A stretch of DNA of 64,000 nt from Hyaloraphidium curvatum SAG 235-1 (Eukaryota; Fungi; Monoblepharomycota). The notes under the pieces were generated by a model. That model was not told the DNA's origin. It saw only the letters and a program-made list of their open reading frames with translations, and did not search any database. Location of the stretch: NCBI GenBank assembly GCA_025558095.1, contig JAIVFI010000005.1, positions 124,001 to 188,000 on the forward strand, read 5' to 3'. Below, piece after piece: positions 8,298-42,071 of the stretch. Numbering within the stretch: the first letter of the stretch is position 1; every line of letters starts with the position of its first letter. Position numbers and translations under genes: made by a program.

Positions 8298-8587
8298 GAT
8301 CCTTATTCCCTCTTACACATGCGAGGAAGGCGTTGTTGGCCGCCCCCTACTAGATCGCACTATAACTTATGCATGTATTGAAGCTCGAGCACGGTAGATG
8401 AGCGAAGCTGCAGGAAGCTCAAAGCATTGGTCATCTCCTTTCAATAGCAAAGGCGGAAGATTGGGTGCCGGGATTGGCAACCAGCTTCGATGCGGCCGCG
8501 GAGCCGCAGCAGCAGCCTCGCGGGCCCTGGAATCGCAGGACGGCCCACATCCCCCTCGCTCGGGCCGGCCTCCGCGCTTTCGAGCAG

Positions 8588-9724: not shown

Positions 9725-9998
9725 GATCCGATTTGTATGTTTCGTGCTTTCGTGTCAATCAATGTCGTTGTCGTATCGCGAGGTCTAGGAGGCATTTGGG
9801 GCCGTTGCTCGGAGGTCCGTGACCGTGCCCATGGCGAGTGACATCGGCCCGTCACGGCACAAATGCCGAAACGCTTTCGCAGAGCGTGAACGTCGGGTCT
9901 AAAGGCCCTTTTGTCAGGCTCCATGTCGTGGGAACGTTAGCTTGCTGGACCATCCCAAGCACATTCCGTGACTTTCAACACACCGAAAGGGAAGCTTT

Positions 9999-10181
9999 GG
10001 TCTACGTAAATGCAGTCGGTCTTCGACCGTCATAGTGGTCTACGGCCATTGGCCTGGAACGGCGTGAGGAAGTGGGTCTAAGGCCGTCAAACCGGTCCAC
10101 GGGCCGACAAAGTGGTCTACGGTTGATTACGACGGTGCACTGCGTGGTACATTGGTCTACGGCCGCGCTGATGCGGTCCAT
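9999..10181. repeat. Degenerate tandem array of about 10 units of 19-21 bp with a GGTCTAC(GGCC) core
   Basis: Cores start at 9999, 10018, 10037, (10056), 10075, 10094, 10114, 10134, 10154, 10175. Confidence 0.75.
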
Positions 10182-10290
10182 GTCGCCGCAAAAGCAGAAA
10201 AGGGGTCGTGGATGTAAACCTAAGCGAGTGTCCGCGCTTTGTCCGGAGGCTTCTTGTCCGGGGGGCCACGTGGCGGTCCAGCGGCCGCGC

Positions 10291-10298
10291 TATAAAAG
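10291..10298 (+). promoter_or_regulatory. Canonical TATA box (TATAAAAG) in a GC-rich context, with a CCACGTGG palindrome at 10266-10273
   Basis: gcggccgcgcTATAAAAGagcgcg seen directly; function untested. Confidence 0.4.
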
Positions 10299-11121
10299 AG
10301 CGCGGGTGAACCTCAGAATCGCGCAGCACCATCACGCCCTCGGCACATCGTCTCCTCGCGAGCGATGCGGGCGAGGAAGAAGCGCAAGAAGGACCCTCTG
10401 TAGCGCGCTCTCGGTGAGGGCGCTGTCCCGGTGAGGGCGGCCGCGCGGCGCGAAGGAAGCTCCTCCCTGACGTCTTCCCGTTCTCCTCCCTGACGTCGCC
10501 CTGCTCTGCTCGTCACCGCTCTGACACTGGACGCGCAGCGCATTGCCGGTCGTGAGGCGGGAGCCGCTCCAAGATACGGCACCCTACCGCTCTTTCGAGG
10601 AGGGTCGGTGGCGCAGTCCGGCTCGCCGGCGTCGACGCTCACTCCGGTCTGGCTTTTGCGCGACAGGATCTTAATCATCTTTGCTTTCGGCTTCATCTGT
10701 AGGCCTCGTACCCCGCAACGCGCGCTCCGTCTGCACCGCCCCGCTATCTCGGTCTCGAACTCCTGCAATTGCTACACGCACCTCTCACACCCACCCCCCA
10801 ATCACAACCAAGGAAATGTGCGTTCGGATTGCGCACCTTCTTTTCGCTTCTGATGCTTTTTTGAAGGAGGACCGCGTCCTTCCACGGTCAACGCGTACCG
10901 ACCTACGCACAGGCCGATGGGAGGCGACCCGGCGGGTTTGCCGTCGGGGTCGATGATGGTAGTTTCGGAGGTTTTGTAAGGTGGCCGAAAGGCCTTGGAG
11001 CCCGTTTGCCGGGCTGTTCGTTCGCAGGTGTTCGGGGCGAGAGGGGGAGGGGTAGTCCACGCGTGTTTTGGTGGTACATTCCGCCGAACCGGCTCTGTCC
11101 TCCTCGCTCTCCTCCGCCACG

Positions 11122-25301: not shown

Positions 25302-26801
25302 TCAAGGCCCCCTCCCTTCCCTCCCCTCCATCCACATCTCCAGCATCCTCACCCCCCACGCGACCCCGAAACCCGTCTGCTCCGTCCCGATCGCGCCCAA
25401 CCCGTCCTCGCACGCCGCCGCGGACAGGTCGGCGTGCACCCACGGCCTGCCTCCGACGAAGCGCGAGAGGAACCGCGCGGCGAGGATGTGGTCCGGGTCG
25501 TCCTCGCCGGCGGAGCACTGCTTGACGTCCGCCGAGTCAGAGTCGAGGAGGGTGTCGTAGTCGTCGTCGAAGGGGAAGGCGGTCACCCGCTCGCCCGACT
25601 GGATACCGGCGTCGACGGCCAGCGCGGCCAAGTGGGGATCGCTGGCAAATATCCCGGAGCGGCGGTACCCGAGCGCGGCGATCATCCCGTAGGTCAGCGT
25701 GGCAAAGTCCACCACCAGATCGGGCTTACTCCTGCACGCCAGCGCGAGCGCGTCGGCCAGCGCCAAGCGGCCCTCGGCGTCGGTGTCGACGATCTCGACG
25801 GTGGTCCCGTTGCACGCGCGGACGACGTCCCCGGGGCGCATGGCACGCGGGGACAGGTCGTTGTCCGCGATCGCGAGCCACGCGTCGATGCGCAGGGGCA
25901 GCGCGAGCTCCGAGGCGGCGTGGATGACCCCGAGGACGGCGGCGGAACCGCCCATGTCCTCGTGCATGCCGCGCATGTCCTCGCCGGGCTTGATATTGTG
26001 CCCCCCGACGTCGAAGCAGATCCCCTTGCCGACCAGCGCCACGCTACCCTTTGGCGGGGCTTTGGGGACGTACGACAGCCTGACGATGCACGCGTCGCGG
26101 TGCTCGCTGCCCTTGGCGACGGCGAGGAAGCACCCCGCGCCCATCCTCGCCAGCCGCTCGGCGTCGAACACTTCCAGCCCCCACCCCTTCTCCCCCGCCA
26201 GCTCCGCCGCGCGGGCGCGGTACGCCGCCGGGCCGAGCTCGGCGTGGGGGAGGGCGGTCAGGGAGCGGCAGAGGTGGTTGGCGGCCGCCAGCGCGGCGGC
26301 GCGGGCGGGCCGGCAGGGGACGGCCCAGAGCTTGAGCTCCTTCAGGGGGAGGGGGAAGTCGCTGGCCTTGCGGTGCGGGAGCGGGGCACCGTTGGCAAGG
26401 CCCACGTATGCGGCCATTTCGCCGGCGTCGGGGATCTGGGAGAGGACGACGGCGTCGATCCGGGATGGGTCCTCCTCCAGCAGGAGGGAAAAGGCCTCCC
26501 GAAGGGTGGTGAGGTTGTGGAAGGCGTCCTTGGAAGGGTCCAGCGCGGTCCACACACGCAGCCCGCCGTTGCCCGCGGTGGCCTGCACCGGGTCCTCGGA
26601 CAGCTCGGCCGGCTTGGCTTTGCGCCTGCGGAGGACGCCGCGGAGCACGTCACCATCGGGGCAGTCGCCGGGGACTTCATCAGAGACGTCGAGAACGGTC
26701 AGGACGTGCGTGAGCGGGGCGAGATCCGAGGGGGAGGGAGGCCCGGGGGAGTGGAGAAGCACGGCGACGGAGGAGTGCGTGGAAGCGTCGGCGGGCGGCA
26801 T
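25302..26801 (-). CDS. M17 leucyl aminopeptidase family protein, intronless
   Basis: LVGKGICFDVGG, MHEDMGGSAAV, DTDAEGRLALAD, DFATLT, PWVHADL. Confidence 0.92.
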   Translation of the reverse strand: MPPADASTHSSVAVLLHSPGPPSPSDLAPLTHVLTVLDVSDEVPGDCPDGDVLRGVLRRRKAKPAELSEDPVQATAGNGGLRVWTALDPSKDAFHNLTTLREAFSLLLEEDPSRIDAVVLSQIPDAGEMAAYVGLANGAPLPHRKASDFPLPLKELKLWAVPCRPARAAALAAANHLCRSLTALPHAELGPAAYRARAAELAGEKGWGLEVFDAERLARMGAGCFLAVAKGSEHRDACIVRLSYVPKAPPKGSVALVGKGICFDVGGHNIKPGEDMRGMHEDMGGSAAVLGVIHAASELALPLRIDAWLAIADNDLSPRAMRPGDVVRACNGTTVEIVDTDAEGRLALADALALACRSKPDLVVDFATLTYGMIAALGYRRSGIFASDPHLAALAVDAGIQSGERVTAFPFDDDYDTLLDSDSADVKQCSAGEDDPDHILAARFLSRFVGGRPWVHADLSAAACEDGLGAIGTEQTGFGVAWGVRMLEMWMEGREGRGP

Positions 26802-27000
26802 CGCGGGGGTGTTGGAGCCGGGAACTTAAGAGTGCCAAAGAAGCGGAGCCAGAGAGCAATAGAGACACTCCTATTGACTTTCTGAGCCCGGCGAGACGGA
26901 GCGGGGAGTTATTGGTGGAAGGGAGACGACGATCGCGATCGGGCGGGCGCTGTGCGAACCAACTGTTTACGGGGGCTGCCTCCCCCCGGCGCCGTCCGGC

Positions 27001-29823
27001 ATGCCGCGGCTCCGCCCGTGCTTCCGGCCGTTAGGACTGCTGCTCTTCGCGGCGGCGGCGCTAGCGGTGTGGCTGCATTCGGGCGCGCCGTTGGACGCGT
27101 CTGCAGGCAGCGACCGCCCAGGACGGCCCATCGTAGTCGACTACGCCGGCCGTCGGGCCGCGGACGCCTCGGAGGGGCCAGGTCGGACACGGAACCCGCG
27201 GGCCGACGAGGAACTGCGCGCGCTGAGGGCCGCCGCGCGGAAGCAGGCCGGTCGGCGGACCCGGAAGCGGCCGCCGGCCGAGGACGAAGGGGCCGGGTTG
27301 ACCGCTGGCGATGAACACAGGGACGAGGCGCCGGAACCGGACGACTCGGGTGCAGAACGGACACAGGACGACCCTCTGACCACGGAGAACGAGCACGCGT
27401 CCGCGGACAACGGCAGCGAGCCCGCCCAGCCGGCCCACCGCCCGCGCCCCCGCCGCAAGAAGAACCCCCTCTCCCCACCCCCCTCCTCCCCCTCTCCACC
27501 CCCTCCCGCCCCGCCTCCCCCTCCTTCTGCTCCTACCTCCCGCCCCTGTCGCTTCCCTTACCTCGCCGTGGCCCTCAAAACCGGGCGCTCCGTCGCCCGC
27601 GCGCGGCTGCCCCCCGTGCTGGCGACCTGGGCGCGGGACCTGTGCCACCTCGCCCTGCTGACCGATTCAAACGGGCAGCTGGACGCGAGCGTTGTGCAGA
27701 AGGGGTACAAGGGTGAGTTCAACGAGGCCGGGACGGGCGAGGCGCGCTTGGGCACCGGGGCGCGGGACTTTCTCGTGGAGCTGGGGGGGAGGGAGTTTCG
27801 CGCCTACGACGTCGTGGGAGGGCTGTACGACGAGTACGAAGGCGGGGATCCCGATGCGGATCCGGTGCGGGTGCGGGCGATGGAGGTGCGGTGGCGGGAC
27901 AGGTGGATGCCCGGGGAGTGGGAGCGGGCGGAAGGGGAGGGGGACAAGAGGGAGGGTGAATTCCTGGAGAAGAGGAGGGCGGAAAGGAGGAAGGAGAGAG
28001 AGGAGAAGGAACGGAAGGCGAGGGAGGAGGAGCGGGGGAAGGGGGACGGTGAGGGCGAGGGTGTGAAGGTGCAGCGGGACGCCGGGGAGCAGCCTTTGCC
28101 GGGCACTGGCCCCGACACGGGCGGCAGCAGCAGCGCGGTGGACGACCCGCCGAGGGACAAGGAGCCCGAGGTGGAGATCCCCAAGGGCGACTCGACGCCC
28201 ATCGGCGAGGACGAGCCCAGGCTGGAAGGACAGGGTGAGACGGTGCGGTCCGCCGATCCCGACGAGGAATTGGATGACAGGACGGCGGATGAGAGCGAGG
28301 GTGGGGAAGCGGAGGAGGAGGCGGAAGCGGAACAGCCGCGCCGCGGGATGAGGCGGATCGGGCGGCGAAACCGGCATCGGAAGGACCACATGCCGCGAAG
28401 GCGGAGATTGCTCCGGCGCGAGGGGGCAGTCGAGCGGCCGCGCCGCGTTCGCCGCCTCCGGACTCGGCCGCGCCGACAGCTGCTTTTGGAACGCGTTCTG
28501 CCGCCCCGAAAGCTGCTGCCGGACAGGGAGCTGAAACCGCGGCGCCGATCGCCTTCCGAGTCATCACTCCACCGTCGGCATCGACCTCGCCGGCAACGCC
28601 GGCGCCGCCTGACGAAGCGCGGCACGGGCGGCACCTACAAAGGCTGGGCCTCGGACGCGGAAAAGAACCTCCCCGCCTTTGTCGAGCTCTGGAACCGCTT
28701 CCCCGACGCCAAGTGGTACCTCATGGTCGACGACGACGCCTACCCCTTCCTCGCCTCCCTGTGGCGGCACCTCGAATCGCACTACGACGCCTCGGAAGTG
28801 CACTACATCGGCAAAGCGTTCCAGTTCACGGGCTGCCACTGGGAGCCCCGCGCCGACGACCGCGTGAAGGAGCTCTACTTTGCCTCGGGCGGCGCGGGGA
28901 TCGTGCTCTCCCGCGGCGCGATGCTGGCCGCGCTGCCGCTCGCGCGGCTGGGGGTGCAGCTGACAAAGGGGTGCTGGGCCGGCGACGCGCGGGTGGCGAT
29001 CTGGCTTTACGAGGCCCGCGCGAGGCTGGAATGGCCGTGGCAGGTGGGGGGGAGGATGCACGTCGGGCCGCAGGGGCCCTGGCATTCCTTCGGAAGGGCG
29101 TGCGATCCCGTACTGACGTACCATCTGGTGCCGCCGGACAAGTACCCGAGGATCGGGGCGGTGGAGCGGTCGCCGGCCTCGGGTGGCGGGCACGTGACCA
29201 ACGCGGACATGTGGCACGTGTTCTGGGACCGCGCAGGGGAGGAGCTGCTGGGGCTCGAAGGCAGGGTGGACAGGGACACGGGCCGCGGGGGAATGGATTT
29301 CCTGGAGCTGTCGCCGGCACCCGAGGGCGGCACGGTGGACGATTTCGGCGAGGCGGCGGAGGAGGACCTGGCCGACCTGCTCGAGGGCACGTACAACAAG
29401 CCGCATCTCACGGACAAGGTGCGGCGAGGGCTCAACGCCACGGGGCTGGACCCGCGGACGCCCATGTACAGGAAGGCCGCGCTCGCGCTGCGGTGCATGG
29501 AGGCATGCCACGCCCTCGACCGGGTCACGGACATCCCGGCGGCGGTGGCGGTCCCCCCGCGCCCCGTGGACGCGTTCCACGGGCGCGTTGCCAAGCCGGC
29601 GAACCTGCTGGACAACCGGTCGTCGCGGTTCGGCCCGTGCACGCAGTGGACGCTGGCGCCCAACGGCGCGTGCTGGCTCAAGTCGGGGTTCTCGCAGCCG
29701 GGCGCGGCGGGGGGGCACTGGAGCGGGATCGTGGATGGGGCGCTGGAGCGGTATGCGGCGGTTGGGAAGGATCGGGCGGCGGGGGCGCTGTGCGGGTGGG
29801 ACGCGGGGGTCCGGGACGGTTGA
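27001..29823 (+). CDS. GT31 (Fringe/C1GalT-like) glycosyltransferase with a large charged insertion and a C-terminal PAN/apple-like Cys module
   Basis: Signal anchor; VALKTG...TW; GWASDAEKNLP; KWYLMVDDDAY; FASGGAGIVLSRGA; AGDARVA; CTQWT...CWLK. Confidence 0.8.
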   Translation: MPRLRPCFRPLGLLLFAAAALAVWLHSGAPLDASAGSDRPGRPIVVDYAGRRAADASEGPGRTRNPRADEELRALRAAARKQAGRRTRKRPPAEDEGAGLTAGDEHRDEAPEPDDSGAERTQDDPLTTENEHASADNGSEPAQPAHRPRPRRKKNPLSPPPSSPSPPPPAPPPPPSAPTSRPCRFPYLAVALKTGRSVARARLPPVLATWARDLCHLALLTDSNGQLDASVVQKGYKGEFNEAGTGEARLGTGARDFLVELGGREFRAYDVVGGLYDEYEGGDPDADPVRVRAMEVRWRDRWMPGEWERAEGEGDKREGEFLEKRRAERRKEREEKERKAREEERGKGDGEGEGVKVQRDAGEQPLPGTGPDTGGSSSAVDDPPRDKEPEVEIPKGDSTPIGEDEPRLEGQGETVRSADPDEELDDRTADESEGGEAEEEAEAEQPRRGMRRIGRRNRHRKDHMPRRRRLLRREGAVERPRRVRRLRTRPRRQLLLERVLPPRKLLPDRELKPRRRSPSESSLHRRHRPRRQRRRRLTKRGTGGTYKGWASDAEKNLPAFVELWNRFPDAKWYLMVDDDAYPFLASLWRHLESHYDASEVHYIGKAFQFTGCHWEPRADDRVKELYFASGGAGIVLSRGAMLAALPLARLGVQLTKGCWAGDARVAIWLYEARARLEWPWQVGGRMHVGPQGPWHSFGRACDPVLTYHLVPPDKYPRIGAVERSPASGGGHVTNADMWHVFWDRAGEELLGLEGRVDRDTGRGGMDFLELSPAPEGGTVDDFGEAAEEDLADLLEGTYNKPHLTDKVRRGLNATGLDPRTPMYRKAALALRCMEACHALDRVTDIPAAVAVPPRPVDAFHGRVAKPANLLDNRSSRFGPCTQWTLAPNGACWLKSGFSQPGAAGGHWSGIVDGALERYAAVGKDRAAGALCGWDAGVRDG

Positions 29824-29939
29824 GACGGCGCTTGATGTCTTGGTCGGACTCTGCGTCACGCCTGGAATACACGATGTTGGGGTGAGGCGGCGTACGATAC
29901 GGGCTGCACTGTGCTTCCGTGCTACACTCGGGGACCCAG

Positions 29940-30491
29940 TCAAAGTTCGATTTCGCGATTCTGGTCTGCCGAAGACGACCTGTCCCTCCTCGCATGCTCC
30001 TTCCCACGGACCCCCGCGCTTTTCAGAAACATCGCCACGGCACCCGGATGCGGCGAGACGACCGTTTCGGCGAACCTGGTGAGCCTCGCCTCGTCCCCGC
30101 CCAGAACCACCGCAGCGATCGCGCCCAGCGCCCCCGCCAGCGGCCAATGCGGCCCGCACTGCCTCCCGAGAACGCACTTCGCCAGCATCTCCATCCCCTT
30201 TCCCCCATCGGATCCGGCCCCGGCGTCCAGTAGCGCGTCCCCGAAGTCCCTCCAGTCCTCCTTCCGCATCGCCCGGCCGGTCCTGTAGATGGCCGTCCAA
30301 TTGGCTTCGTACACGGCCCTCCTCAATTCATTGAACGCTCCGGCTGCGAGCAAGGCCCGCACGCGGTGGCGGACCGCGACCCGGGCACAGGGCACGAGGC
30401 ACCCGCACGCGCGGCCGAGGAAGGCCAGGTCCGCGAGGGACAGGTGCTCCCCGACGAGGAGCAGGAGGTCGCCGTGGAGTCGGCAGAGCAT
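29940..30491 (-). CDS. Small F-box-like protein (paralog A)
   Basis: MLCRLHGDLLLLVGEHLSLADLAFLGRAC F-box-like N-terminus; paralog at 31811. Confidence 0.6.
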   Translation of the reverse strand: MLCRLHGDLLLLVGEHLSLADLAFLGRACGCLVPCARVAVRHRVRALLAAGAFNELRRAVYEANWTAIYRTGRAMRKEDWRDFGDALLDAGAGSDGGKGMEMLAKCVLGRQCGPHWPLAGALGAIAAVVLGGDEARLTRFAETVVSPHPGAVAMFLKSAGVRGKEHARRDRSSSADQNREIEL

Positions 30492-31810
30492 TCTCGGTGA
30501 ATGCGGAGGTTGGGGGTGTGTGGCCGGGGTCGGCGGACGCACCCGTGGCCTCCCTTGGCCAGGGTCTGGCCGTGGCAAAGATGGCCAGGAGCCTCCTGGC
30601 CCGCTCGGAACTGCAGGCCCCGCCACGGAGAACAAAACTCAGTCCGAATGGACGTCCTGCTCAGGGACCGAGGGCCTTATATCGGGAGCGGGCGATCGGA
30701 AGGACGAAGATTCCAGACCCAGGCCCGGAAACATCTTTCGGAACGCGACTTTTCCCACCGCACGTGACCGTCAGCATGCAATTCGGCGCAAAATCGGAAG
30801 CGATGGCGAGATTCTGGATCGGCAGGGGCATCTGCGGACGTGCCCCGCTACGAAATGGAGAAATGCCTCGCTCTACAGTTTGCCACGGCGGGACCGCGGC
30901 GCTTCCAGTGACCCGTTCCGGCGCCCGATCTTACATCCCGAGGCCCCTGCGCCTCTGCGTGCCATCTCCGTGCTCTAACGGACGGCCCCGTTGCCGGTAC
31001 TGCTTCCGGACGGCGGCGATGTTTTCGGGCGGACACGGAAACCTGTCCTTTGGCAGGTGGAACGGTCCTTTGTGTCGAGCCGGCTGCCTGGATGACGCAA
31101 CGCCGCCGCCCCGATGGGTTTGCGGAGCAAGCGGCGGCCGTAACGGGAGGAGTCGATCGGCTCGGTTGATGGGCGGAATGATTGGCGTGACGCCTGAAGA
31201 GCGGACGGGACTGGCCGACGGGAGAGTTCGGAGTATCGGGCTTGCTTGGAGAAGATGGATCGGCGCGTCCGGGGGATCCACACCCCGTCATCATCCATCA
31301 TCCGGCTCAGCAGAGTCCATGGGGCTCGATGTCGGCGTCCTGAGGTGGTCCGCGGCGACTTTAGCGGAAGATCGGCCCGGACGCGAGCCAGTCTCCGAGA
31401 CCGTCCCCCAAAGCCCCGACTGTTGCACGGCATTCCCGAGCACCTCCTGCGGCACCTGCGCAGCAAGCTATCCGAACACTTCCGGTTCGTAACGTAACTT
31501 CTCTTTCTTGGGAACTCCCTCGTTTCCGTTTCAGATGCCGGCGCGGCCGCCGGAAAGCACGCGATTCCGAACGTTCCACGGCCGAGCCCCTGGCTGAGCC
31601 GGAAAGTGGAACATTCTCTTTGCCGAAGCCCCGACGCCGATAACGGCGCCCGATCCCCGAAAAGCGGGGAGCTGTCCATCCGGACGTGAGCGTACGTTGC
31701 GGCCTCCCGGCCGGCGCCTCTTGTCGAACCCGTCAGCCGAGACGCCGTCAACCCGACCCCAGGCCAGTCAGCATCCCCTCAGACCGGAATCCCCCCGCAC
31801 CCCCAAAATA

Positions 31811-32427
31811 ATGCTCTGCCGCCTCCACACCGACCTCCTCCACCTCGTCTGCGCACACCTGCCCCCCGCGGACATCCTCTTCCTCGGCCGCGCGTGCGCC
31901 TGCCTCGCACCATGCGCTCGCGCCGCGCTCCGCCGCCGCGCCAGGGCGATTCTGGCCGCCGGGGCGTTCGACGAATTGAGGCGCGCCGTGTACGATGCCA
32001 ATTGGATGGCGATCTACAGGACCGGCCGCGCGATGCGCCGCGAGGATTGGAGGGAGGTCGGGGCCGGGGAAGCGCTGCTGCACGCGGGGGCGGGATCCTG
32101 TGACGGGGGAAAGGGGATGGAGATGCTGGCAAAATGCGTGCTGAGGAGGTACTCCGGCCCGCATTGGCCCCTCGCGGGCGCGCTGGGCGCGATCGCCGCG
32201 GTGGTTTTCGAAGGCGATGCCAAAGGCTGAGGGAGTTCGCGGAGGAGGCGGTCGCGCCGCATTCGGGTGCCGCGGCGGTGTTTCTGAAGGGTGCGGGGGT
32301 TTGCATCGACGGGAGTGGGAAGGACGGGACGTCCCAGGAAGCCGATGAGAAGGGAAAAGCAGAGCGGGCCGCTGCTGGACCGGGAACGCGCCAAAGCCCC
32401 GGCCGTGTGGAGTTGATGAAAATCTAG
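31811..32427 (+). pseudogene. Small F-box-like protein (paralog B, inverted), frameshifted at about 32222
   Basis: MLCRLHTDLLHLVCAHLPPADILFLGRAC; homology (RLREFAEEAVAPHSGAAAVFLKGAGV) continues in another frame after GDAKG*. Confidence 0.6.
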
Positions 32428-32500
32428 GATCGGTGGCTTCCGAACTCGGCCAATCCGGACCCGAACTGCCAGGTGTCGATCGCGGCGGCCGTCGGCAACC

Positions 32501-34360
32501 TCAGCCACGACCCGAGCCGGTCCCGTCTGCCCCCGCGAGCTCCCTCAGCGCCGCGATCCCCACGGGCGGCTCCGTCCTCCACGGCACCACGAAGCACCTC
32601 CCCGCCATGCCCCCCACCCTCCGCATCTGCACCCTCTCCCCCGCCACCCTGCCCGCGAGCAGCGGATGCCGCGTCCCCGCCGCCGCCAGGCTCGCGTTGA
32701 CCACCCACGCGAACGGCTCCACGCCCGCCCTGCGCAGATCGTCCTGCAGCGCCGCGGCCTCGGAGACGGGGGTGGTTTCGGGCAGCGCGACGAGCACCGT
32801 GCGCGTATGCGCGGGGTCGCGCAGGCGGAGGAGCGGGGTCGAGTAGTGCTTGGTACCGGGGGGAAGGGCGCGCTCGGTCTGGCGGTGGTACGCGCCCGTG
32901 GCGTCGATGAGGAGGAGCGTGTGGCCCGTGGGGGCGGTGTCGAGGACGACGAAGGAGGAGCGGGCCTCGGCGACGGTGCGGGAAAAGGCGTGGAAGACGG
33001 CGACCTCTTCCGTGCAGGGGGACCGGAGGTCCTCCAGGAGGAGCTTCCTGCCTTCGTCGTCGAGGTTGCGGCCCTTAGTCGCCAGGATCTTGTCGACGTA
33101 GCGCTGCGTTTCGGCCCGGGGGTCGATCCGGTCCACGAGGAGGTGGGGCAGGGTGCCGCGGAGGGTGGGTTCCAGGTGCGCCGCGGGGTCCGTCGTGGTC
33201 AGGTGCACGGATTTCCCGCGGGAGGCGAGCGCGACGGCGATCGCGGCCGCGATGGTGGTCTTTCCCACGCCGCCTTTGCCCATGACCATGACCAGGCCCG
33301 TGTCCCGCTCGGCGAGCTGGTCCACGAGGGCCGAGAGCGGCGGCGGGAGCGGCGCCTCGTCGCCGGCGTCAAGGGCTTTGGGGGCCACGGGGCCCGCCGA
33401 GCCGGAAGGATCCAGCAGGGCACGGAGCGCGGGCAGCCCGACCATGTCGAACGGCTTGAGCGGCACCGCGTCCCGCGGAAGCGAGGCCAGCGACGCGGGC
33501 ATCGCTGCCATTGCCGCCTGCTGCCTGGACCGCAGGGACTCCGCCACGGCATCCCCGGCGGGATCGGCGTCAAACACGCCGTTGACAATGAGGTGCTGGT
33601 TCGCGAGCCCCAGCGCGGCGAGCTCCCCGCGCGTGCGCTCGGCCTCGGCCAGCGCCGATGCGTCCGGCCTGGCGACCAGCACGATCCGCGTCCTCCCGGG
33701 GTCCGCCAGCGCGGCCACGGCGCGCGAGAACATGTCCCGCTGCGTCGTGAGCCCCGAGTGCGGGCCCAGGCACGAGGCGCCGCGGTCGTTGCCCTCCAGG
33801 AAGCCGGACCACAGCCGCGGCAGGCTCAGCAGCCTCAGCGTGTGCCCCGTGGGCGCCGTATCGAAGACCACGCACTCGTAGGCGGGGTCCGGGTCCGCCA
33901 GCAGGCCGGCAAACTCGTCGAAGGCGGCGATCTCGGTGGTGCACGCGCCCGAGAGCTGCTCCCGCACCTTGGTTATTTCCTCCGGCGGCGTCTCCCTTGG
34001 CATCTGTTGGATGACGCGCCCGCGGTACGCCTCGGCCGCTTTGCCGGGGTCGATGTCCCGCACGCGCAGCCGCGGCGCGCCCGGCACGTCGCGCGCGCCC
34101 GGCCCCGGCGCGCCCAGCATCTCAGCCAAATTGGACGCCGGGTCGGTGCCGACGAGCAGCACGCGGCGGCCGCCGTCGGAGAGCCGCAGCGCCGCCGCGC
34201 ACGCCAACGACGTCTTGCCGACGCCGCCTTTGCCGCTGAAGAACAGGAACCGCGGCGCGCCGGACAGCGCGGACAGCGCGCGCGCACCGCAGAGCGGGAA
34301 AGGCTGCACGGCGCGTCGGAGCTGGGCAAAGGACGCGTTTAGTCCGTTTAGGGGCGGCAT
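32501..34360 (-). CDS. arsA: Bacterial-type two-domain arsenical pump-driving ATPase with a ~30 aa N-terminal extension; intronless
   Basis: Two GKGGVGKT P-loops, two DTAPTGH motifs, LSGACTTEIAAFDEF, GASCLGP, EDLRSPCTEEVAVF, LPETTPVSEAAALQDDLRRAG. Confidence 0.95.
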   Translation of the reverse strand: MPPLNGLNASFAQLRRAVQPFPLCGARALSALSGAPRFLFFSGKGGVGKTSLACAAALRLSDGGRRVLLVGTDPASNLAEMLGAPGPGARDVPGAPRLRVRDIDPGKAAEAYRGRVIQQMPRETPPEEITKVREQLSGACTTEIAAFDEFAGLLADPDPAYECVVFDTAPTGHTLRLLSLPRLWSGFLEGNDRGASCLGPHSGLTTQRDMFSRAVAALADPGRTRIVLVARPDASALAEAERTRGELAALGLANQHLIVNGVFDADPAGDAVAESLRSRQQAAMAAMPASLASLPRDAVPLKPFDMVGLPALRALLDPSGSAGPVAPKALDAGDEAPLPPPLSALVDQLAERDTGLVMVMGKGGVGKTTIAAAIAVALASRGKSVHLTTTDPAAHLEPTLRGTLPHLLVDRIDPRAETQRYVDKILATKGRNLDDEGRKLLLEDLRSPCTEEVAVFHAFSRTVAEARSSFVVLDTAPTGHTLLLIDATGAYHRQTERALPPGTKHYSTPLLRLRDPAHTRTVLVALPETTPVSEAAALQDDLRRAGVEPFAWVVNASLAAAGTRHPLLAGRVAGERVQMRRVGGMAGRCFVVPWRTEPPVGIAALRELAGADGTGSGRG

Positions 34361-34651
34361 CGTTGCTCCCGGCTGGACGGTGTTTCGGCGGCTTACAAAT
34401 CCGGTCCCGCGTCTCCCCCAGATGAGGCGTCGGTTCACAGAGCAGTTGACCACCAACTGCTCCACGGATCGCGAGGCATTTCTGCAGGTCGGACCGCGAG
34501 GAAACGCGAAGCAATCTGTATGCGGAGCAGGTACACGCTCTCTTCCCACGGAAGCACACGCGCTCTTCGCATCGAACTCAAGAGGCCGACGATCGCCCAC
34601 ACGCCCGGCCCGCCCCGCCTCCAAAGCCACCCCATCCTCCCGCCCGCACCC

Positions 34652-35836
34652 TCACCCGTCGGGCCACCCGCCCCTCGGGGCGCACTTGAGCTCCCCCGTC
34701 GACTCGTCGTACACCACCAGCGTCCCCGTCGAGTCGTCCTCCTCCCATGGCGGCGGCGCCAGGAACGGGTGCAGCAGCGCGGCGTGCGCCGACATCCTGC
34801 CCGCGGGGTCGTTCACCAGCAGGCCGCGGACAAAGTGCTCGAAGAAGGGCGGCGGCGCGGGGCGCGCGGGGAAGGAGAAGCTGCCGCCGTCGATGCGCCG
34901 GTAGAGCTCGACAAAGTCGCCGCAGTCCTCGAAGGGGGTGGCGCCAAAGAGCAGCTCGTAGGCGAGGATGCCGGCCGAGTAGCAGTCGACCCTTTCGCCG
35001 TAGGGCTCGCCGCGGACCAGCTCCGGGGGCAGGTAGAAGGGGGTGCCGATCATCGTGGTCATGCCGCGCTTGTCGGAGGGGCGGACGTGGGCGCCGCAAA
35101 AGTCGGCGAGGAAGAGGGAGGAGGGGTCGTGGAAGGAGCGGAGGAGGACGTTGGGCGCCTTGATGTCGCGGTGGACGATGCCGTGGGAGTGGAGGTGCTC
35201 GAGCGCGGAGAAGACTCGCTCCATGACGGTGTGCACCGTGGTGTCGGGGAGGGTGCCTCCTCGGGATTTGGCGAAGACTTGCAGGTCCTGCGAAGGACAG
35301 CGGACGGTGTCAGCATGGGTGTCAGCCGGGGTTCTCCTTGCGGCAGCCAGCCCACCCACCCCCTCTCCCAGCTCCAGCACCATGTAAATCTTCTCCGGGG
35401 TCGAGAAGAACTCGAACATGCGGCACACGGAGGGGTGGGTGATTGCGGCGACGGCGCGGAAGCGGTCGCGCAGCGCGGCGTGCTGCGTCTCCCGCTCCCG
35501 CAGCGCGGCGTCGAGCTTGCGGCCGCCGGTGCCCGGGTCGGCCGGCAGCGCCGGCCGCTCGAAGCACTTGACCGCGACGGCGGTGCCCCAGTCCAGCGCC
35601 ACGGCGGCGCGCACCGTGGCCTCGGAGCCCTTTCCCAATACGCGGACCATGCGGAAGCGCTTCCGCCGGCGCAGGCCGTGCTCGCACGCCGATGTGGCGT
35701 CGTCGTCGGGGTCCGCGGGCGGTGCGGGGGCCGGCGCCACCGCGGTGCCGTCCGACGAGGTCGGCGTGGGCGGGGACGCGCGGCCGCCGCCGCCCCAAAG
35801 CGGCGGCTGGGCGGGGGCGAAGTAGGGGGACAGCAT
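34652..35836 (-). CDS. Ser/Thr protein kinase (CAMK/Aurora-like); in-frame intron 35288-35359
   Basis: LGKGSEATV, VAVK, HRDIKAPNVLL, DFC (for DFG), GTPFYLPPE, DCYSAG, LLHPFL. Confidence 0.85.
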   Translation of the reverse strand: MLSPYFAPAQPPLWGGGGRASPPTPTSSDGTAVAPAPAPPADPDDDATSACEHGLRRRKRFRMVRVLGKGSEATVRAAVALDWGTAVAVKCFERPALPADPGTGGRKLDAALRERETQHAALRDRFRAVAAITHPSVCRMFEFFSTPEKIYMVLELGEGVGGLAAARRTPADTHADTVRCPSQDLQVFAKSRGGTLPDTTVHTVMERVFSALEHLHSHGIVHRDIKAPNVLLRSFHDPSSLFLADFCGAHVRPSDKRGMTTMIGTPFYLPPELVRGEPYGERVDCYSAGILAYELLFGATPFEDCGDFVELYRRIDGGSFSFPARPAPPPFFEHFVRGLLVNDPAGRMSAHAALLHPFLAPPPWEEDDSTGTLVVYDESTGELKCAPRGGWPDG

Positions 35837-36774
35837 TGCGCGGGATCGACCGCCGAAAGAGTCGGGTCGCGGTCGTTCGCCGCGCGAGGGTCCGTCCCTT
35901 AGCTGGCCGGCAACCCGGCGGTGCGCGACCCCCGCGCCGCCGCCGCCATGCAAGGCGGGGGTGGAGATCGGGCCGGCGGGATGATGCGCCCCGTCCGCGA
36001 CGGCGGCATGCGGCGCCGTGCGAGATCGGCGGCCGAGATCCCACCGAGAAGCTGTGTCCTGCGGGCCGGTTCAGGCATCGGCCGGTGACTCGGCCCCGGT
36101 GCCAAGGCCCCGCAGCGCCGCCCCCGTGCCCCCCGTCGCCACCATGCGCGGCTTCCCTTCGTCCGGCGAGCTCGGCAGGCTGCCCTGTCTGGCTGCGGGC
36201 CTGGTGCGCGGCCCGCGGGACGGCGATGGGTGCGCCATATTCGGCGGTTCGAGACCCCAATTTCGAGGGTACCGCCGCGTCGGACCCGCAGGGCCTCGGG
36301 CCTCGCCGACTCGACGACGTCGCGGCCGGCCGTACCAGATTGTGCATCCGGGTGCCGACCATCCTTGCGGCGGAAGCAACTCCGCACGCGCGGCACGCGG
36401 CCGCCGTCCGCCGCCCCGGCGGACACGCAGAGGACGGCGGCCCCGCGGGACCGCCTCGCCGAGCCCGCCCGCAGGGGCTGGCCCGTCCCGACATCGCCCG
36501 CACGGCCGACCGCACTCATCCGTCATCCGCTCGCGGTCGCCGGTGCCCGCCCTGCAACCCGCCGAAAGGTGCGCGCCTTTCCCCGGCACCCCCCGCGCGG
36601 CCGCGGCCCCGACTCGGGCCTGGCGCGGGACCGGAGGAACTCGAAGGCAGATGGATTCGTTGACAGACGATCTTCGAAGCAATACGAGCTCGGGTAGCAA
36701 CTTCGCTTCTTCGCGGCGTCGTTCATGGCCCGCGGCCGATACAATCGAGCGCTCGCCAGGAACCGCCGCGCGGC

Positions 36775-37164
36775 TCACCCCTCCTTCTCCTTCCCCTTCT
36801 CCCCCAGCAGGGCCGCCAGATGCGCCAGCCCGATAACCAGCTCGAACCCCACCGCCCCGAAGTTCTTTTTCGTCCTCCGCTCCGCCCCGTCCAGCGCCAG
36901 CGACACCGCCCTCCCCACCGCTGCGCCGACCCACGCCAGCCCGGCGACCCTCGCGCCGGAGGCGTTCCCGCGCAGCAGCTGCCGCGCGGCTTCGAGCTCG
37001 AGGAAGAGGAAGAGTCCCCCATAAGTCGCGCGGCCCTCGGCGAGGCCCTCGGGCGCGGCGGCGCGGACGCCGACAAAGGCGAACGCGGCGTGCGGGGAGA
37101 GGAGGCCCATGGCGCCGAGGGCGGCGCCGGCAAGGATGCCGAGGGGGGGCAGGACGGCGGCCAT
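36775..37164 (-). CDS. Small 4-TM membrane protein, DUF4345-like
   Basis: GLAEGRATYGGLFL and GRAVSLALDG motifs; four hydrophobic segments. Confidence 0.65.
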   Translation of the reverse strand: MAAVLPPLGILAGAALGAMGLLSPHAAFAFVGVRAAAPEGLAEGRATYGGLFLFLELEAARQLLRGNASGARVAGLAWVGAAVGRAVSLALDGAERRTKKNFGAVGFELVIGLAHLAALLGEKGKEKEG

Positions 37165-37443
37165 GGCGGCGGCGGCGGCGGGAGGCGGAGGGAGACGGCG
37201 GACGGGAGACACGGAGACGGATGGCGCGATTGGTTTCCAAACAGCGCGACGCGGGTGAGGCCCCCGGCGTTGAGCCATGTCTCCCGAAAATCATCGGGGA
37301 AAAATGCGCTCGCGAGCACTCGCTCGCCGCTCTCCCGTCGAGCATTTGGCGCCGTTCGGACGGTTGCTGCCCGCCTCGTCGGCCGGAGCGAAACACTCAC
37401 GCAGGAACGCACCCCCGCGACGGGCACCGAGAAACGTTCCTCC

Positions 37444-37964
37444 ATGGCGGGCAAAGTTACTCTCGGACTGCCCTTCCTTCATCCCATCGAGAACCCCGTC
37501 TTCCACCTGAACACCGCCCCCCTTCATGTCCTACGCAGGCTGACTGGCAGGCCGTGCTCTGCCACCCCTTCTTCCAATCCACCGATCCGGAGCGCCTGAT
37601 CCGCGCCGGCACCAAGCAGGCCGAGGACCCCAACGAGGCCATCAGGTTCAAGACCAAGGACGGCAAGCCGCCCGCCCCCCCAGGCCAATCCCAGGCCCGT
37701 CGACCTCCCCGACGCGGTCGACGAGGCCGTGGAGGAGGCCGCGAAGGCGTACGATTCCGCGGAGGAGCCGGGCGAGCCCGACGACGGGTCGATGGCCGCG
37801 TACCTCTCGACCGACGAGGCGAGGGCCGCCGGGAAGGGGAAGGGCAAAGCGTCGGGATATACGGCGCATACCACGCCGCTGACGAGGAGACGGCATACTT
37901 CGCCACGACGGCGGGGGCGGGAAAAGGAAGGGAAAGGGGGGCGGACGCGGCGGGGGGAGGTTGA
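37444..37964 (+). pseudogene. Degenerate coding remnant of unknown family
   Basis: Protein-like, codon-biased segments (DWQAVLCHPFFQSTDPERLIRAG; DLPDAVDEAVEEAAKAYD; SVGIYGAYHAADEETAYF) occur in shifting frames. Confidence 0.3.
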
Positions 37965-38111
37965 GCAAGCTGCGGAGGCCGCGCATCCTCTCTGTGGCCC
38001 GGATGGTCCAGGCATGGGAATGAGATCGGGTGCCTTCGGAGTACTTCGGGGAGCAACATGATGTATGGAAGTCGGTGTAGCAAGTACATTGGAGATCGTC
38101 TTTCGCATGCC

Positions 38112-39560
38112 TCACGCGGTCGCCACAAGCAGCACAATGGTAAGAGCCAGCCGTGCAACAGGCGAGCCGGCTCGCGTCCCGGTCATCCCATCGGCGACTG
38201 CAACGACCATCCCTCCCGCTGCATCGCTCTCATCCGTCGGGCAACGCGGGTCCGCCGCCTGCTCTCCGTTAAACACCCCTGCGGCCCTGGCGCACCATCC
38301 GCCGGCTCTCTCCGGGCAGATCATCCCCCCGCCTTCCGCCGACGGCTCGGGTTCCCCCGGCGCGAGCACCGTGCACGCACGATCGGAGTACCACGAGCAG
38401 CGCCGGGCGTCCGGGCCCCGGCATTGGACCGAGCTGTCGGAGAAGCGCACGGAAAAGTAGTTGCCCTTGTCCGCGCAGGAGCGGATGCAGGTCCAGGGCA
38501 TGGGAGGCGCGAGACCAGGGCATTCGTAGTCCGGCGGAATGCCGTGGAGGGCGGCGTCCGCGGCGAGCTTGCACCACCCCGTGTCGGTCTGCGTGCAGGT
38601 GAGCCCAACGACGCGGGCGCCGTAGCCGCGGTCGTCCGACGGCGCCGGCTCCCCCGGGGCGAGGATGGAGAGGCCCATGTCCGTATACCAGGAGCACCGC
38701 GAACGGTCGGGGCCGTGGCACATCACCCGGAATCCGGCGCGCCTGATCCGGAGGTAATTGCCTTTGTCCTCGCACGACCGAATCGCCATCCACGGCCCGT
38801 GGAAGGTCTCGTTGCTCGACGTTTCGGTCACGTCGGGGCACGATTCCGGTTTCTTGGGGTACAGGAGGTAGTTGTGAACCTCGCTGCAGAAGCTGTAGCT
38901 CTCTTCCCACGGTACGTCCTGCGTTGCGTTGAGTTCGACGTTCTTGCCGCGGCATCGGGCACCGCCCCCGGCGACGGGGTACCCGTTCTCGGCCACCGTG
39001 CAGAAGGGGTCCGAAAACAGGCTGCAGGTCCCGTTCTTTGGCCCGGCGCAGCTTGCCATGAACCGGTACTCGATGTCATTGAACGAGGGGCCGGTGCTCG
39101 CTGACGCCCGGATCCACTTGCAGCCCAGCGACGGCGCCCTCACGCACGACTCGGTGCCGTCGTACTTGCCGCACGTGAAGCCCCACTGCGATGCCCGCAC
39201 TCCGAGACGGCGGCGGCCGACGGACGCACCGGTGCCCCTGTCGCACCACCCGATGCACTGCGACGCTCCGCGGTTGCCGTAGGAACCGGACCAAGTGGAG
39301 CGGCACACCAGGAAGCCCGTGGCGGGATCGATGACCTCGAAGTCCCATGAATCGGAGTGGCTGGTGGCCGCCGTCGGCGCAGGGTGGGCGAGCAGCACGG
39401 CGAGGGCGGCGGCTGCCGCCGCGCAGAAGAGGGCTGCGGCGCCATTGCGGCGGAGGGCGACGGCCCCGAACCGGCGCCGGCGGTGCCGTTTCTTCGGAGA
39501 GTTCGTTTCTACGTCCGTTCTATCGTCCGTTGTTGTAAGTTCCCTGGCAAAGTGGTTCAT
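38112..39560 (-). CDS. Secreted/GPI-type Cys-rich surface protein, copy 1 (lacks the middle module)
   Basis: Hydrophobic leader; IRSCxDKGNY...CxGPD...CSWY modules; hydrophobic C-terminus; intronless. Confidence 0.8.
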   Translation of the reverse strand: MNHFARELTTTDDRTDVETNSPKKRHRRRRFGAVALRRNGAAALFCAAAAAALAVLLAHPAPTAATSHSDSWDFEVIDPATGFLVCRSTWSGSYGNRGASQCIGWCDRGTGASVGRRRLGVRASQWGFTCGKYDGTESCVRAPSLGCKWIRASASTGPSFNDIEYRFMASCAGPKNGTCSLFSDPFCTVAENGYPVAGGGARCRGKNVELNATQDVPWEESYSFCSEVHNYLLYPKKPESCPDVTETSSNETFHGPWMAIRSCEDKGNYLRIRRAGFRVMCHGPDRSRCSWYTDMGLSILAPGEPAPSDDRGYGARVVGLTCTQTDTGWCKLAADAALHGIPPDYECPGLAPPMPWTCIRSCADKGNYFSVRFSDSSVQCRGPDARRCSWYSDRACTVLAPGEPEPSAEGGGMICPERAGGWCARAAGVFNGEQAADPRCPTDESDAAGGMVVAVADGMTGTRAGSPVARLALTIVLLVATA

Positions 39561-42071
39561 CGTGAGGTTCTGGTTGCTGGAGTCATCGGTGGCGGAGCAA
39601 GGCCCTGGATCCCTGGTCCCTGATGAGGCTGCCGCGCGTCCCAGTGACGAGGATCGGACTTCATCATCGGCGGATATCAAAGGCTCCATACAAAAGCACT
39701 ATCGGTATTCGAGTTCACACAACCGCCACAACCACGGCGACGGCGAAGACCGGCAGCGCGAAAGAGACGGCTCTCCGCCTGGCCCCAGATGGCCTGCCCG
39801 ACGCCCCGGTATCCGCGGGCGAGCTCGTGGGGCTTGCCGCGGAAGCAACCGTCCCTCCCGCCGCATTGCTCCCCGTCGGGCACGTCGGATCCGCAGCCTG
39901 CTCCCCGCTGAATACCCCGACGGCCCTGGCGCACCATCCCTCGGCCCTCTCCGGGCAGATCATCCCGCCGCCGTCCGAGGAGGGCTCGGGTTCCCCAGGC
40001 GCCAGAACCGTGCACGCACGATCGGAGTACCAGGAGCAGCGCTGGGCGTCTGGGCCGCGGCATTGGGCCACGCGGCCGGCTGCGCGCACGGCGATGTAGT
40101 TTCCCTTGTCTGAACAGGAGCGGATGCAGGTCCAGGTGGAGGAAGGCGGGGTCGAGGTTGGGGATGCCTGACCAGCTGAAGTGGTTTGTTGCACAACTGT
40201 CGACTCGTGCCTGGCCTGGGTCGTGGTGGCAGGCAGCCTTCCGCCGTTGGCATAGTCCCACTCCGGATGCGCGGCAAAGAAGCCCCGAGCGCTCGAGCAC
40301 CAGATTTCAGTGCAGGGGCACATGCAGGTGCCGCCCTTGGCCATCAGCTCCGTCGGGGTGCACACGTGGCCTCCCGGGCCCTCGTCCCGCGCTGCTACCG
40401 CGCGGCCACATTGTCGCTTCTTGCTATCAGGACAGCCGCTCGGCCAGGCCACCTGGACGGTGCAGTTTGCATCCTCGTACGCCCAGCAGTTCTCTGCATC
40501 AGGCCCACGGCACTGCAGCGTGTTGCGGCCGTCGGCATCCACGCGCCGGACCTTCACGTAGGTGAAGCAGAGCACCTCTCCCAAGCACTGCCAGTCAGAA
40601 AGCGGCGACAGTGTGCGCACAGGTCCGGGGGTGGTGGTCGTGGAGGTACGCGTCCGGGTCGTTGGGGGCGGGAGGCCGGGGCACTTGTAGTCGGGCTGGA
40701 TGCCGCGGAGGGCGGTGTCGGCGGCGAGCTTGCACCACCCCGACTCGGTCTGGTTGCAGGTGAGACCCACAAGCCGGGAGTCATCGGTGCCGCCCGACGG
40801 CGCCGGCTCCCCGGGGGCGAGGATCGAGAGGCCCGGATCGGTGAACCAGGAGCACCGCGAATTTTCTGGGTACGGGCCGTGGCACATGACCCCGAAGCCG
40901 GCGCGTCTGATGCGGAGGTAGTTGCCCTTGTCCTCGCAGGACCGGATCGGCATCCACGGCCCGAAGAAGGGCTCGTCAGAAGAGGTCTCGGTCACGTCGG
41001 GGCACGACTCTGGCTTCTTCGGCTTCTGAAGATAGTCCCAAACATCATTGCAGAAGCTGTAGGTCTCGTTCCACTGGATCTTTGGCTCGAACTGCTCAGG
41101 TTTGGTTGGGAGAGCCCTGCCGATGCAGGTGGCGCCCCCGCCCGCGGCCGGATCCCCGTTGTCGGCCGGCCCCGCGCAAAAGGGATCCGAGAAAAGGCTG
41201 CATGTCCCGTTTGCCGGTCCGGCACAGCTTGCGTGGTACAGGTACTGGCCCAGGCCGCTGTCGCTGTGCGCCGACGCTCGGATCCACTTGCACCCGAGCG
41301 AGGGCGCACGCACGCAAGAGTCCGTGCCGTTGTACTTGCCGCAGGTGAAGCCCCACTGCGACCGGGAGGCGAGCCGGCGGCGGCCGTAGGCGGCGTACGG
41401 GCCGCCGTCGCACCACCCGATGCACTGCGAGGCGTGCCAGCCCCCGTACGCGCCGAAACCCTCCCGGCGGCACACCGTGAAGCCCGTGGCGGGGTCGACG
41501 ACCTCCGTGACGTCAAAATATGAGTGACCAGCGGCAGCCGGCGCAGGGAGGGCGAGCAGCGCGGCGAGGGCGGCGGCGGCCGCGGCGCGGAAGACCGCGG
41601 CGCCGGCATCGCGGCGGGCGGAGGCCCCGGACCGGCGCCGCCGGGGGCGGTCATTCGGAGAGTTCGACTCTACGTCCGTTCTATCGTCCGTTGTTGTAAG
41701 TTCCCTGGCAAAGTGGTTCATCGTGAGGTTCTGGTTGCTGGAGTCATCGGTGGCGGAGCAAGGCCCTGGATCCCTGGTCCCTGATGAGGCTGCCGCGCGT
41801 CCCAGTGACGAGGATCGGACTTCATCATCGGCGGATATCAAAGGCTCCATACAAAACCACTATCGGTATTCGAGTTCACACAACCGCCACAACCACGGCG
41901 ACGGCGAAGACCGGCAGCGCGAAAGAGACGGCTCTCCGCCTGGCCCCAGATGGCCTGCCCGACGCCCCGGTATCCGCGGGCGAGCTCGTGGGGCTTGCCG
42001 CGGAAGCGACCGTCCCTCCCGCCGCATTGCTCCCCGTCGGGCACGTCGGATCCGCAGCCTGCTCCCCGCTG
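39509..42071. repeat. Near-identical ~400 bp direct repeat (about 39509-39910 and 41670-42071, offset 2161 bp)
   Basis: Covers a gene 3' end, the intergenic gap and the next gene's 5' end; only a few substitutions seen. Confidence 0.9.
39715..41721 (-). CDS. Secreted/GPI-type Cys-rich surface protein, copy 2
   Basis: Same family; three C..GP(D)...C.W/Y modules with Thr-rich linkers; GPI-like tail. Confidence 0.8.
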   Translation of the reverse strand: MNHFARELTTTDDRTDVESNSPNDRPRRRRSGASARRDAGAAVFRAAAAAALAALLALPAPAAAGHSYFDVTEVVDPATGFTVCRREGFGAYGGWHASQCIGWCDGGPYAAYGRRRLASRSQWGFTCGKYNGTDSCVRAPSLGCKWIRASAHSDSGLGQYLYHASCAGPANGTCSLFSDPFCAGPADNGDPAAGGGATCIGRALPTKPEQFEPKIQWNETYSFCNDVWDYLQKPKKPESCPDVTETSSDEPFFGPWMPIRSCEDKGNYLRIRRAGFGVMCHGPYPENSRCSWFTDPGLSILAPGEPAPSGGTDDSRLVGLTCNQTESGWCKLAADTALRGIQPDYKCPGLPPPTTRTRTSTTTTPGPVRTLSPLSDWQCLGEVLCFTYVKVRRVDADGRNTLQCRGPDAENCWAYEDANCTVQVAWPSGCPDSKKRQCGRAVAARDEGPGGHVCTPTELMAKGGTCMCPCTEIWCSSARGFFAAHPEWDYANGGRLPATTTQARHESTVVQQTTSAGQASPTSTPPSSTWTCIRSCSDKGNYIAVRAAGRVAQCRGPDAQRCSWYSDRACTVLAPGEPEPSSDGGGMICPERAEGWCARAVGVFSGEQAADPTCPTGSNAAGGTVASAASPTSSPADTGASGRPSGARRRAVSFALPVFAVAVVVAVV

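Follow-up and report, generated by a model that had tools for sequence, protein, structure and literature searches.

The arsA gene and its product

We analysed a stretch of 64,000 nucleotides (nt) from the freshwater fungus Hyaloraphidium curvatum SAG 235-1 (contig JAIVFI010000005.1, positions 124,001 to 188,000 of the forward strand), referred to below as the window, and an arsA gene that lies on its reverse strand. Textbooks describe ArsA as the motor that uses ATP to drive bacterial arsenite pumps; to our knowledge, eukaryotes are thought to have retained only Get3, an ArsA cousin with a different job. The arsA coding sequence (CDS) stands downstream of a protein-kinase gene, from which it is separated by a short spacer, and the position of these features and of the motifs within arsA is given in Table 1.

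Table 1. Features at the arsA locus of H. curvatum (window coordinates; residue numbers refer to the fungal ArsA).
Feature	Coordinates	Strand	Remarks
arsA CDS	32501..34360	-	619 amino acids (aa) plus stop (620 codons), intronless; RNA-derived contigs collinear and without joints within the gene
N-terminal extension, residues 1-28, MPPLNGLNASFAQLRRAVQPFPLCGARA	34277..34360	-	precedes the part homologous to bacterial ArsA
A1 P-loop GKGGVGKT, residues 43-50	34211..34234	-	motif located by coordinate
A1 DTAPTGH signal-transduction motif, residues 167-173	33842..33862	-	motif located by coordinate
A2 P-loop GKGGVGKT, residues 361-368	33257..33280	-	motif located by coordinate
A2 DTAPTGH motif, residues 474-480	32921..32941	-	motif located by coordinate
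Cys140, equivalent of E. coli Cys113, metalloid site	33941..33943	-	alignment
Cys197, equivalent of E. coli Cys172, metalloid site	33770..33772	-	alignment
Cys449, equivalent of E. coli Cys422, metalloid site	33014..33016	-	alignment
Kinase-arsA spacer, 291 nt	34361..34651	-	open in the arsA frame, no in-frame ATG; without joints in the RNA-derived contig that spans 34207-35286
Host protein-kinase gene (public model 308 aa, P0241)	34652..35650	-	Pfam Pkinase, 1.6e-41

The predicted product is a complete tandem A1-A2 ATPase, as a first-pass annotation of the window had proposed. Both P-loops and both DTAPTGH motifs are present, and the protein gives a full-length match to the NCBI equivalog model TIGR04291 ('arsenical pump-driving ATPase'; model positions 3-564 of 565) at 702.3 bits, above the cut-off of 650. 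Pfam ArsA_ATPase matches it in two stretches. The top structure match is E. coli ArsA 1F48 (residues 32-610, E=1.7e-188), and E. coli R773 ArsA (1F48/1IHU/1II0/1II9) aligns with the fungal protein end to end, sharing its two halves, P-loops, DTAPTGH motifs and Cys113/Cys172/Cys422 site. An AlphaFold model built on 42 sequences is confident overall, with a predicted template modelling score (pTM) of 0.83; confidence falls in residues 1-26, in a loop around residue 195, in the linker that joins the two domains and in the six C-terminal residues.

Alignment also bears out the residues that had been claimed to match the arsenic/antimony site of the E. coli protein: the equivalents of Cys113, Cys172 and Cys422 are in place, Ser447 aligns with Ser420, and both DTAPTGH motifs have their histidine. 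The three cysteines are invariant across 198 bacterial relatives, and the fungal ArsA keeps 193 of the 199 columns that are at least 97% conserved among these, and loses none of the Cys triad, the histidines or the lysines of the P-loops. Judged by its sequence, the fungal protein is an intact, ordinary two-domain bacterial-type ArsA, and the unusual part is the host. It would be expected to act as an As(III)/Sb(III)-activated ATPase.

Could the protein instead be a tandem Get3/TRC40-type factor that targets tail-anchored proteins, comparable to the two-domain ARSA1 from green algae? Get3/TRC40/ASNA1 proteins, ARSA1 (5ZME) among them, share the SIMIBI ATPase fold and the superfamily with ArsA, and the general Get3/ArsA subfamily model TIGR00345 scores 311 bits on the fungal protein. 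Two-domain chains are also known in eukaryotes: 5ZME ('ATPase ARSA1') is 687 aa long, and tandem Get3 has been described in red algae (PMC6593721), so the earlier statement that eukaryotic homologues are single-domain was too broad, although fungal Get3 is described as such (PMC6593721). Nevertheless, in a search of solved structures every Get3/TRC40/ARSA1 structure scored at most 99 bits, compared to 631 bits for ArsA; ArsA models and structures together span 620-700 bits. Get3 proteins lack the metalloid Cys triad, have a TRC40 insert and a hydrophobic groove and, in fungi and animals, carry a CxxC zinc motif (PMC6593721), whereas the fungal ArsA has two domains, contains no CxxC motif in its sequence and possesses the triad, which is treated as diagnostic of ArsA (PMC6593721). 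In addition, H. curvatum has a native Get3 as a separate, multi-exon gene on contig 20. The scores, the two domains, the triad, the missing CxxC and the separate native gene together rule out a Get3 identity, which we consider extremely improbable.

Residence in the fungal genome and ancestry of the gene

The contig that carries arsA is 937 kb long and belongs to an assembly of 31.9 Mb in 55 contigs with a guanine-plus-cytosine (GC) content of about 70%. Eukaryotic-type neighbours on it encode a Pkinase protein, a Fringe-like glycosyltransferase, a reprolysin-like peptidase, a sulfotransferase, an ankyrin protein and an M17 aminopeptidase. The kinase gene, directly upstream of arsA, has a single GT-AG intron of 72 nt (35288-35359, reverse strand); that arsA adjoins an intron-bearing kinase gene had been noted before and is confirmed by the public protein P0241, which omits exactly the 24 intron codons, and by RNA-derived sequence. 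Among the contigs assembled from a separate run (X1), one of 1216 nt begins inside the arsA CDS, crosses the 291-nt spacer and enters the kinase message with the intron spliced out (34207-35286 joined to 35359-35494). From this contig we conclude that X1 contains RNA, and that a physical link exists between arsA and a host gene whose message is spliced. Further X1 contigs lie on arsA (32098-32581, 32690-33316 and 33799-34057); they are collinear with the genome and free of joints, and thus arsA is transcribed and intronless.

A contaminating or chimeric origin, with arsA stemming from a Burkholderiales bacterium in the culture, would fit the facts that all relatives are bacterial, that the gene is intronless and that both organisms have high GC. 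This contrasts with the eukaryotic genes that flank arsA on both sides on its 937-kb contig, with the spliced bridging contig from a separate run and with DNA contigs from a second study, which cover 34103-34480 and 34503-34924. Codon choice also speaks for the host. The relative synonymous codon usage of arsA correlates with that of a pool of seven host coding segments at r=0.972 (the kinase intron being taken out before counting) and with that of twelve bacterial arsA genes at 0.66-0.89. The discriminating codons AGG, TCC, AGC, CTC and GGG are all used in a host-like way, with AGG at 1.39 compared to 0.14 in bacteria and TCC at 3.10 compared to 1.04. The top bacterial identity is just 68-69%, and remnants of bacterial neighbour genes were not found around arsA: a tblastn search of 2353 bacterial neighbour open reading frames (ORFs) against 26000-40000 returned generic kinase similarity only. 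Flanking genes, codon usage and the bridging contig effectively exclude a contaminant or chimera, which we regard as having next to no chance of being correct.

All of the best 119 database relatives share 64-69% identity with the fungal ArsA, and the named ones belong to the Burkholderiales (Ideonella, Azohydromonas, Rhizobacter, Piscinibacter); no ArsA more than 69% identical turned up in any source searched. The nearest ESM Atlas clusters are 100% Bacteria. In a quick LG+G4 tree of 116 sequences the fungal ArsA sits on a long branch between two large clades. A site-heterogeneous mixture-model tree of 48 sequences places it in an 11-row clade (ultrafast bootstrap, UFBoot, 89; Shimodaira-Hasegawa-like approximate likelihood-ratio test, SH-aLRT, 98) with proteins of Ideonella, Azohydromonas, Aquincola, Rhizobacter and Piscinibacter, and this clade is nested within a 38-row alpha/beta-proteobacterial clade (100/99). 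On these sequence comparisons, the origin of arsA is bacterial and proteobacterial in type, and the donor was probably a freshwater Burkholderiales lineage of the Ideonella/Azohydromonas type. The long terminal branch and the complete codon amelioration indicate that the transfer is old. We found no orthologue of the kinase outside H. curvatum by which synteny at the locus, and with it the age of the transfer, could be judged. The first-pass proposal of a horizontally acquired bacterial ArsA, now a resident and transcribed nuclear gene, is upheld by the family models, the neighbours, the codon usage, the spliced bridging contig and the tree. We consider it well supported that an ordinary ArsA reached this unusual host by a real and old horizontal transfer and is expressed there.

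Several features of the surroundings deserve mention in their own right. The 291-nt spacer must contain the arsA promoter and 5' untranslated region (UTR) and/or the 3' UTR of the kinase gene. The kinase and arsA ORFs share a frame, with one TGA (34652-34654) and 97 open codons between them, an arrangement with a chance of about 0.12 (one in three for the frame multiplied by 0.37 for an open stretch of 97 codons). A kinase-ArsA fusion by splicing or read-through was considered and rejected, as the RNA-derived contig retains the stop codon; we know of no read-through signal with a TGA-G context. The kinase belongs to a family with at least 7 paralogues in H. curvatum (36-70% identical), and outside the species it is closest to 'eukaryotic-like' Ser/Thr kinases from metagenomes and bacteria, at about 34-40% identity, and not to kinases typical of fungi. 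One X1 contig of depth 32 has a backward joint inside the kinase gene (35185 to 34768, with 8 foreign letters between), which may derive from a paralogue or be an assembly artefact. On the other side of arsA, an inverted duplication (30094-30492 and 31810-32217) has arms of 116 and 257 nt that are 80-84% complementary. It covers two paralogous ORFs, 29940-30635 on the reverse and 31697-32230 on the forward strand, both of which start MLCRLH.DLL and neither of which has a Pfam match; the latter converges on the 3' end of arsA.

Partner genes and the likely work of the protein

That arsA has no pump partner, as had been claimed, is true within the 64-kb window, where no Acr3, ArsB or ArsD is encoded and from which the genome-wide matches are removed to other contigs or by about 360 kb on the same contig. 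It is not true of the genome. Contig 9 carries an Acr3 gene (public model P0121, 'arsenical-resistance protein [Hyaloraphidium curvatum]') with one intron; the TIGR00832 scores of its two exons are 169 and 156 bits. Beside it, an ArsH gene on the reverse strand scores 336 bits on TIGR02690 (cut-off 292) and forms with Acr3, on the forward strand, a divergent pair about 480 bp apart (622164-624630), with ordinary eukaryotic genes around. On contig 10, an ORF of 165 codons (425227-425721) matches the Pfam ArsC-family domain PF03960 at 52 bits; it adjoins a GTP_EFTU-domain gene and may be another bacterial-type gene. The genome-wide search found neither ArsD nor a true ArsB, the sole ArsB-like gene being a distant member of the ArsB/NhaD superfamily far below ArsB cut-offs. 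H. curvatum thereby shares a physiological theme with other eukaryotes that have arsenic genes such as Acr3/ARR3 (fungi and plants), ArsH and ArsM. These are carriers and enzymes that act alone, whereas ArsA is a soluble ATPase that requires a membrane partner.

The named relatives nearest the H. curvatum Acr3 are those of the green algae Raphidocelis, Monoraphidium, Chromochloris and Coccomyxa (64-70% identity), and named fungal Acr3 proteins are just 54-62% identical to it. A 20-kb Logan contig (SRR26194948) encodes an Acr3 that is 87% identical to that of H. curvatum and apparently intronless, with a 230-aa gene divergently upstream, in the position that ArsH has in H. curvatum. Co-transfer of the pump with arsA is ruled out by the identity of the fungal Acr3 to green-algal Acr3 (67%) and to the Ideonella Acr3 that neighbours arsA (33%).

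The ArsA proteins of Ideonella sp. (P0002) and Azohydromonas aeria (P0006) have the top identity, about 68%, and lie in the nearest clade of the best tree. Their loci are arranged arsR-(glyoxalase)-arsC-acr3-arsA, without arsD or arsB and with a 4-bp overlap between acr3 and arsA in Ideonella; the classical arsD-arsA-arsB layout occurs only in a more distant bacterial group, e.g., Serratia. Because two of the nearest relatives stand in such acr3-arsA operons, a lack of ArsD and ArsB is normal for this subtype, whose usual carrier is Acr3, and their absence from the fungus cannot be taken, as it had been, for a sign of an undescribed system. R773 ArsA works with ArsB and ArsD and is encoded in an arsRDABC operon. 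The fungal arsA differs from it in being without ArsB and ArsD partners, in an N-terminus that is longer by about 27 residues and in being a nuclear, monocistronic gene of a eukaryote. In the Burkholderiales, arsA adjoins or overlaps acr3 and both are transcribed together with arsR and arsC; in H. curvatum the candidate carrier is a eukaryotic-type Acr3 encoded on another contig.

Taking these results together, we favour, at a probability of roughly 60%, a transferred and working ArsA that serves Acr3-coupled arsenite extrusion. On this account, a bacterial arsA entered the nuclear genome of H. curvatum by horizontal transfer and was retained as a working gene. From the biochemistry of the family, As(III) or Sb(III) would bridge the three cysteines, close the A1-A2 interface and turn on ATP hydrolysis. 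In the cytosol, ArsA would bind arsenite, dock on Acr3 in the plasma membrane and couple ATP hydrolysis to extrusion, so that a proton-coupled antiporter would become a stronger pump assisted by ATP; other arsenic species would fall to ArsH and the ArsC-family protein. Coupling to Acr3 seems the most likely job because two of the closest bacterial relatives are encoded directly after acr3, without arsD or arsB. It has been argued that ArsA can energise Acr3 (PMC2963123).

A number of observations weigh against this account. Six otherwise invariant positions are altered in the fungal ArsA. Its terminal branch has a length of 0.82, compared to about 0.2 for the sister sequences, and its placement is model-dependent: LG+G4 on 116 rows gives a deeper branching, and a placement outside the alpha/beta clade survives the approximately unbiased (AU) test (p=0.225). 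The evidence for transcription consists of assembled contigs from a run that is only guessed to be RNA, and X1 gives no transcript ends or expression levels. By the identities given above the fungal Acr3 is of eukaryotic type, so ArsA would need to dock on a non-cognate carrier, and the two genes are on separate contigs. In bacteria, too, the association is loose: Acr3 lies within 6 kb in just 18 of 80 loci and many arsA genes stand alone, the arsA of an Aquincola metagenome-assembled genome being located between a MacB-type ABC efflux system (HlyD, MacB, ABC) and MoxR/VWA genes (a region at 2737-10691 of that locus) and that of Rhizobacter having no ars neighbours. This ArsA subtype may have roles beyond pumping, and Castillo & Saier found no co-evolution of ArsA and Acr3. 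A non-cognate, unlinked carrier is the weak point of the mechanism, in which the coupling of ArsA to Acr3 is what we infer from the comparison with bacteria. As a side observation, some close bacterial homologues outside an ars context (Aquincola, Rhizobacter) retain the full Cys triad.

Many of the same facts would suit an orphan ArsA-type ATPase that has left arsenic efflux and has some other essential role or none, for instance as a metalloid buffer or sensor, or as a slowly decaying passenger: most bacterial relatives of the subtype are not beside ars genes, ArsD and a true ArsB are missing genome-wide, Acr3 is non-cognate and unlinked, and the long terminal branch goes together with the six altered positions. 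What such an orphan would not lead one to expect is that the near-invariant positions (193 of 199) and every catalytic and metalloid-binding residue are intact after complete codon amelioration, which argues for purifying selection on the ArsA mechanism, or that the gene is transcribed. We therefore think this explanation unlikely.

The N-terminal extension and what the gene may mean

Homology between the fungal ArsA and bacterial N-termini starts at about L29 (LSALSGAPRF compared to LSLLQDAPRF). The bacterial start position is no longer a Met in the fungal protein, and the next in-frame Met is residue 81. As this lies after the first P-loop, the extension must be translated, from Met1 or from further upstream. 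The arsA frame upstream of Met1 has no ATG back to the kinase stop, and the RNA-derived contig shows no splice there. We searched for a source of the extension in the sequence that precedes arsA in those nearest bacterial relatives that were examined, and found no similarity, either as DNA or in any reading frame.

The first-pass annotation had described this N-terminus as Arg/Ser/Ala/Leu-rich and free of acidic residues. The extension is indeed basic: residues 1-30 include three Arg and neither Asp nor Glu, and no acidic residue appears before position 62. It had gone on to propose that ArsA gained a mitochondrial presequence, is imported and belongs, together with some membrane partner, to a system for arsenite/antimonite efflux, sensing or chaperoning that is as yet undescribed. 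Besides the composition, such a reading can draw on the fact that residues 1-28 are extra to the homologous core and necessarily translated, and on the AlphaFold model, in which residues 1-26 have a predicted local distance difference test (pLDDT) score below 50 and appear unstructured save for a weak, low-confidence helix at 7-16. By eye, a Tom20-type motif (L14-R-R-A-V18) and an R-3 processing pattern (R27-A-L|S30) can be picked out; composition and motif together occur in 0.9% of the ATG-started 30-mers of the window, a figure to be read with the post hoc choice of the motifs in mind. However, the composition alone is found in 18% of the ATG-started open 30-mers of this 70%-GC window and is thus not specific. 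A maximal helical hydrophobic moment as high as that of the extension (0.63 in an 11-residue stretch) arises in 376 of 2000 shuffles (19%). The 42 residues that precede the P-loop fall inside the range of 14-47 annotated in the bacterial relatives. Furthermore, a candidate organellar partner was not found, the sole Acr3 having no presequence-like N-terminus in its public model.

On balance, a mitochondrial system of this kind is a doubtful interpretation, and import of the fungal ArsA has a small, though real, chance of being correct. A working presequence with ArsA inside the organelle, next to an inner-membrane carrier or as a metalloid chaperone that protects lipoamide enzymes, would be less likely still. 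If it were true, mitochondrial ArsA would be an organellar arsenite defence of a sort known from no eukaryote. With the cytosolic, Acr3-coupled ArsA that we prefer, the extension of 27-28 residues would probably have arisen when the bacterial start was lost and translation began from the nearest upstream ATG.

In a survey of 2208 Get3/ArsA homologues, Bacteria and Euryarchaeota are the only groups with members of the ArsA group (PMC6593721). In the full-text literature searched, whose coverage is incomplete and thus no proof of novelty, we found no eukaryote with a reported two-domain true ArsA. In H. curvatum, which belongs to an early-branching lineage, arsA provides a clean case of an old transfer from a bacterium to a fungus. 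It illustrates how start codon and N-terminus are renewed after a transfer, a change from which organelle targeting could develop. The gene also sets up a natural experiment: it can show if an ATPase from bacteria is able to energise an Acr3 of eukaryotic type, the fit that is needed between ArsA and Acr3 being unsettled even in bacteria. If the coupling is true, H. curvatum would have the first ATP-driven ArsA-Acr3 arsenite pump in a eukaryote.

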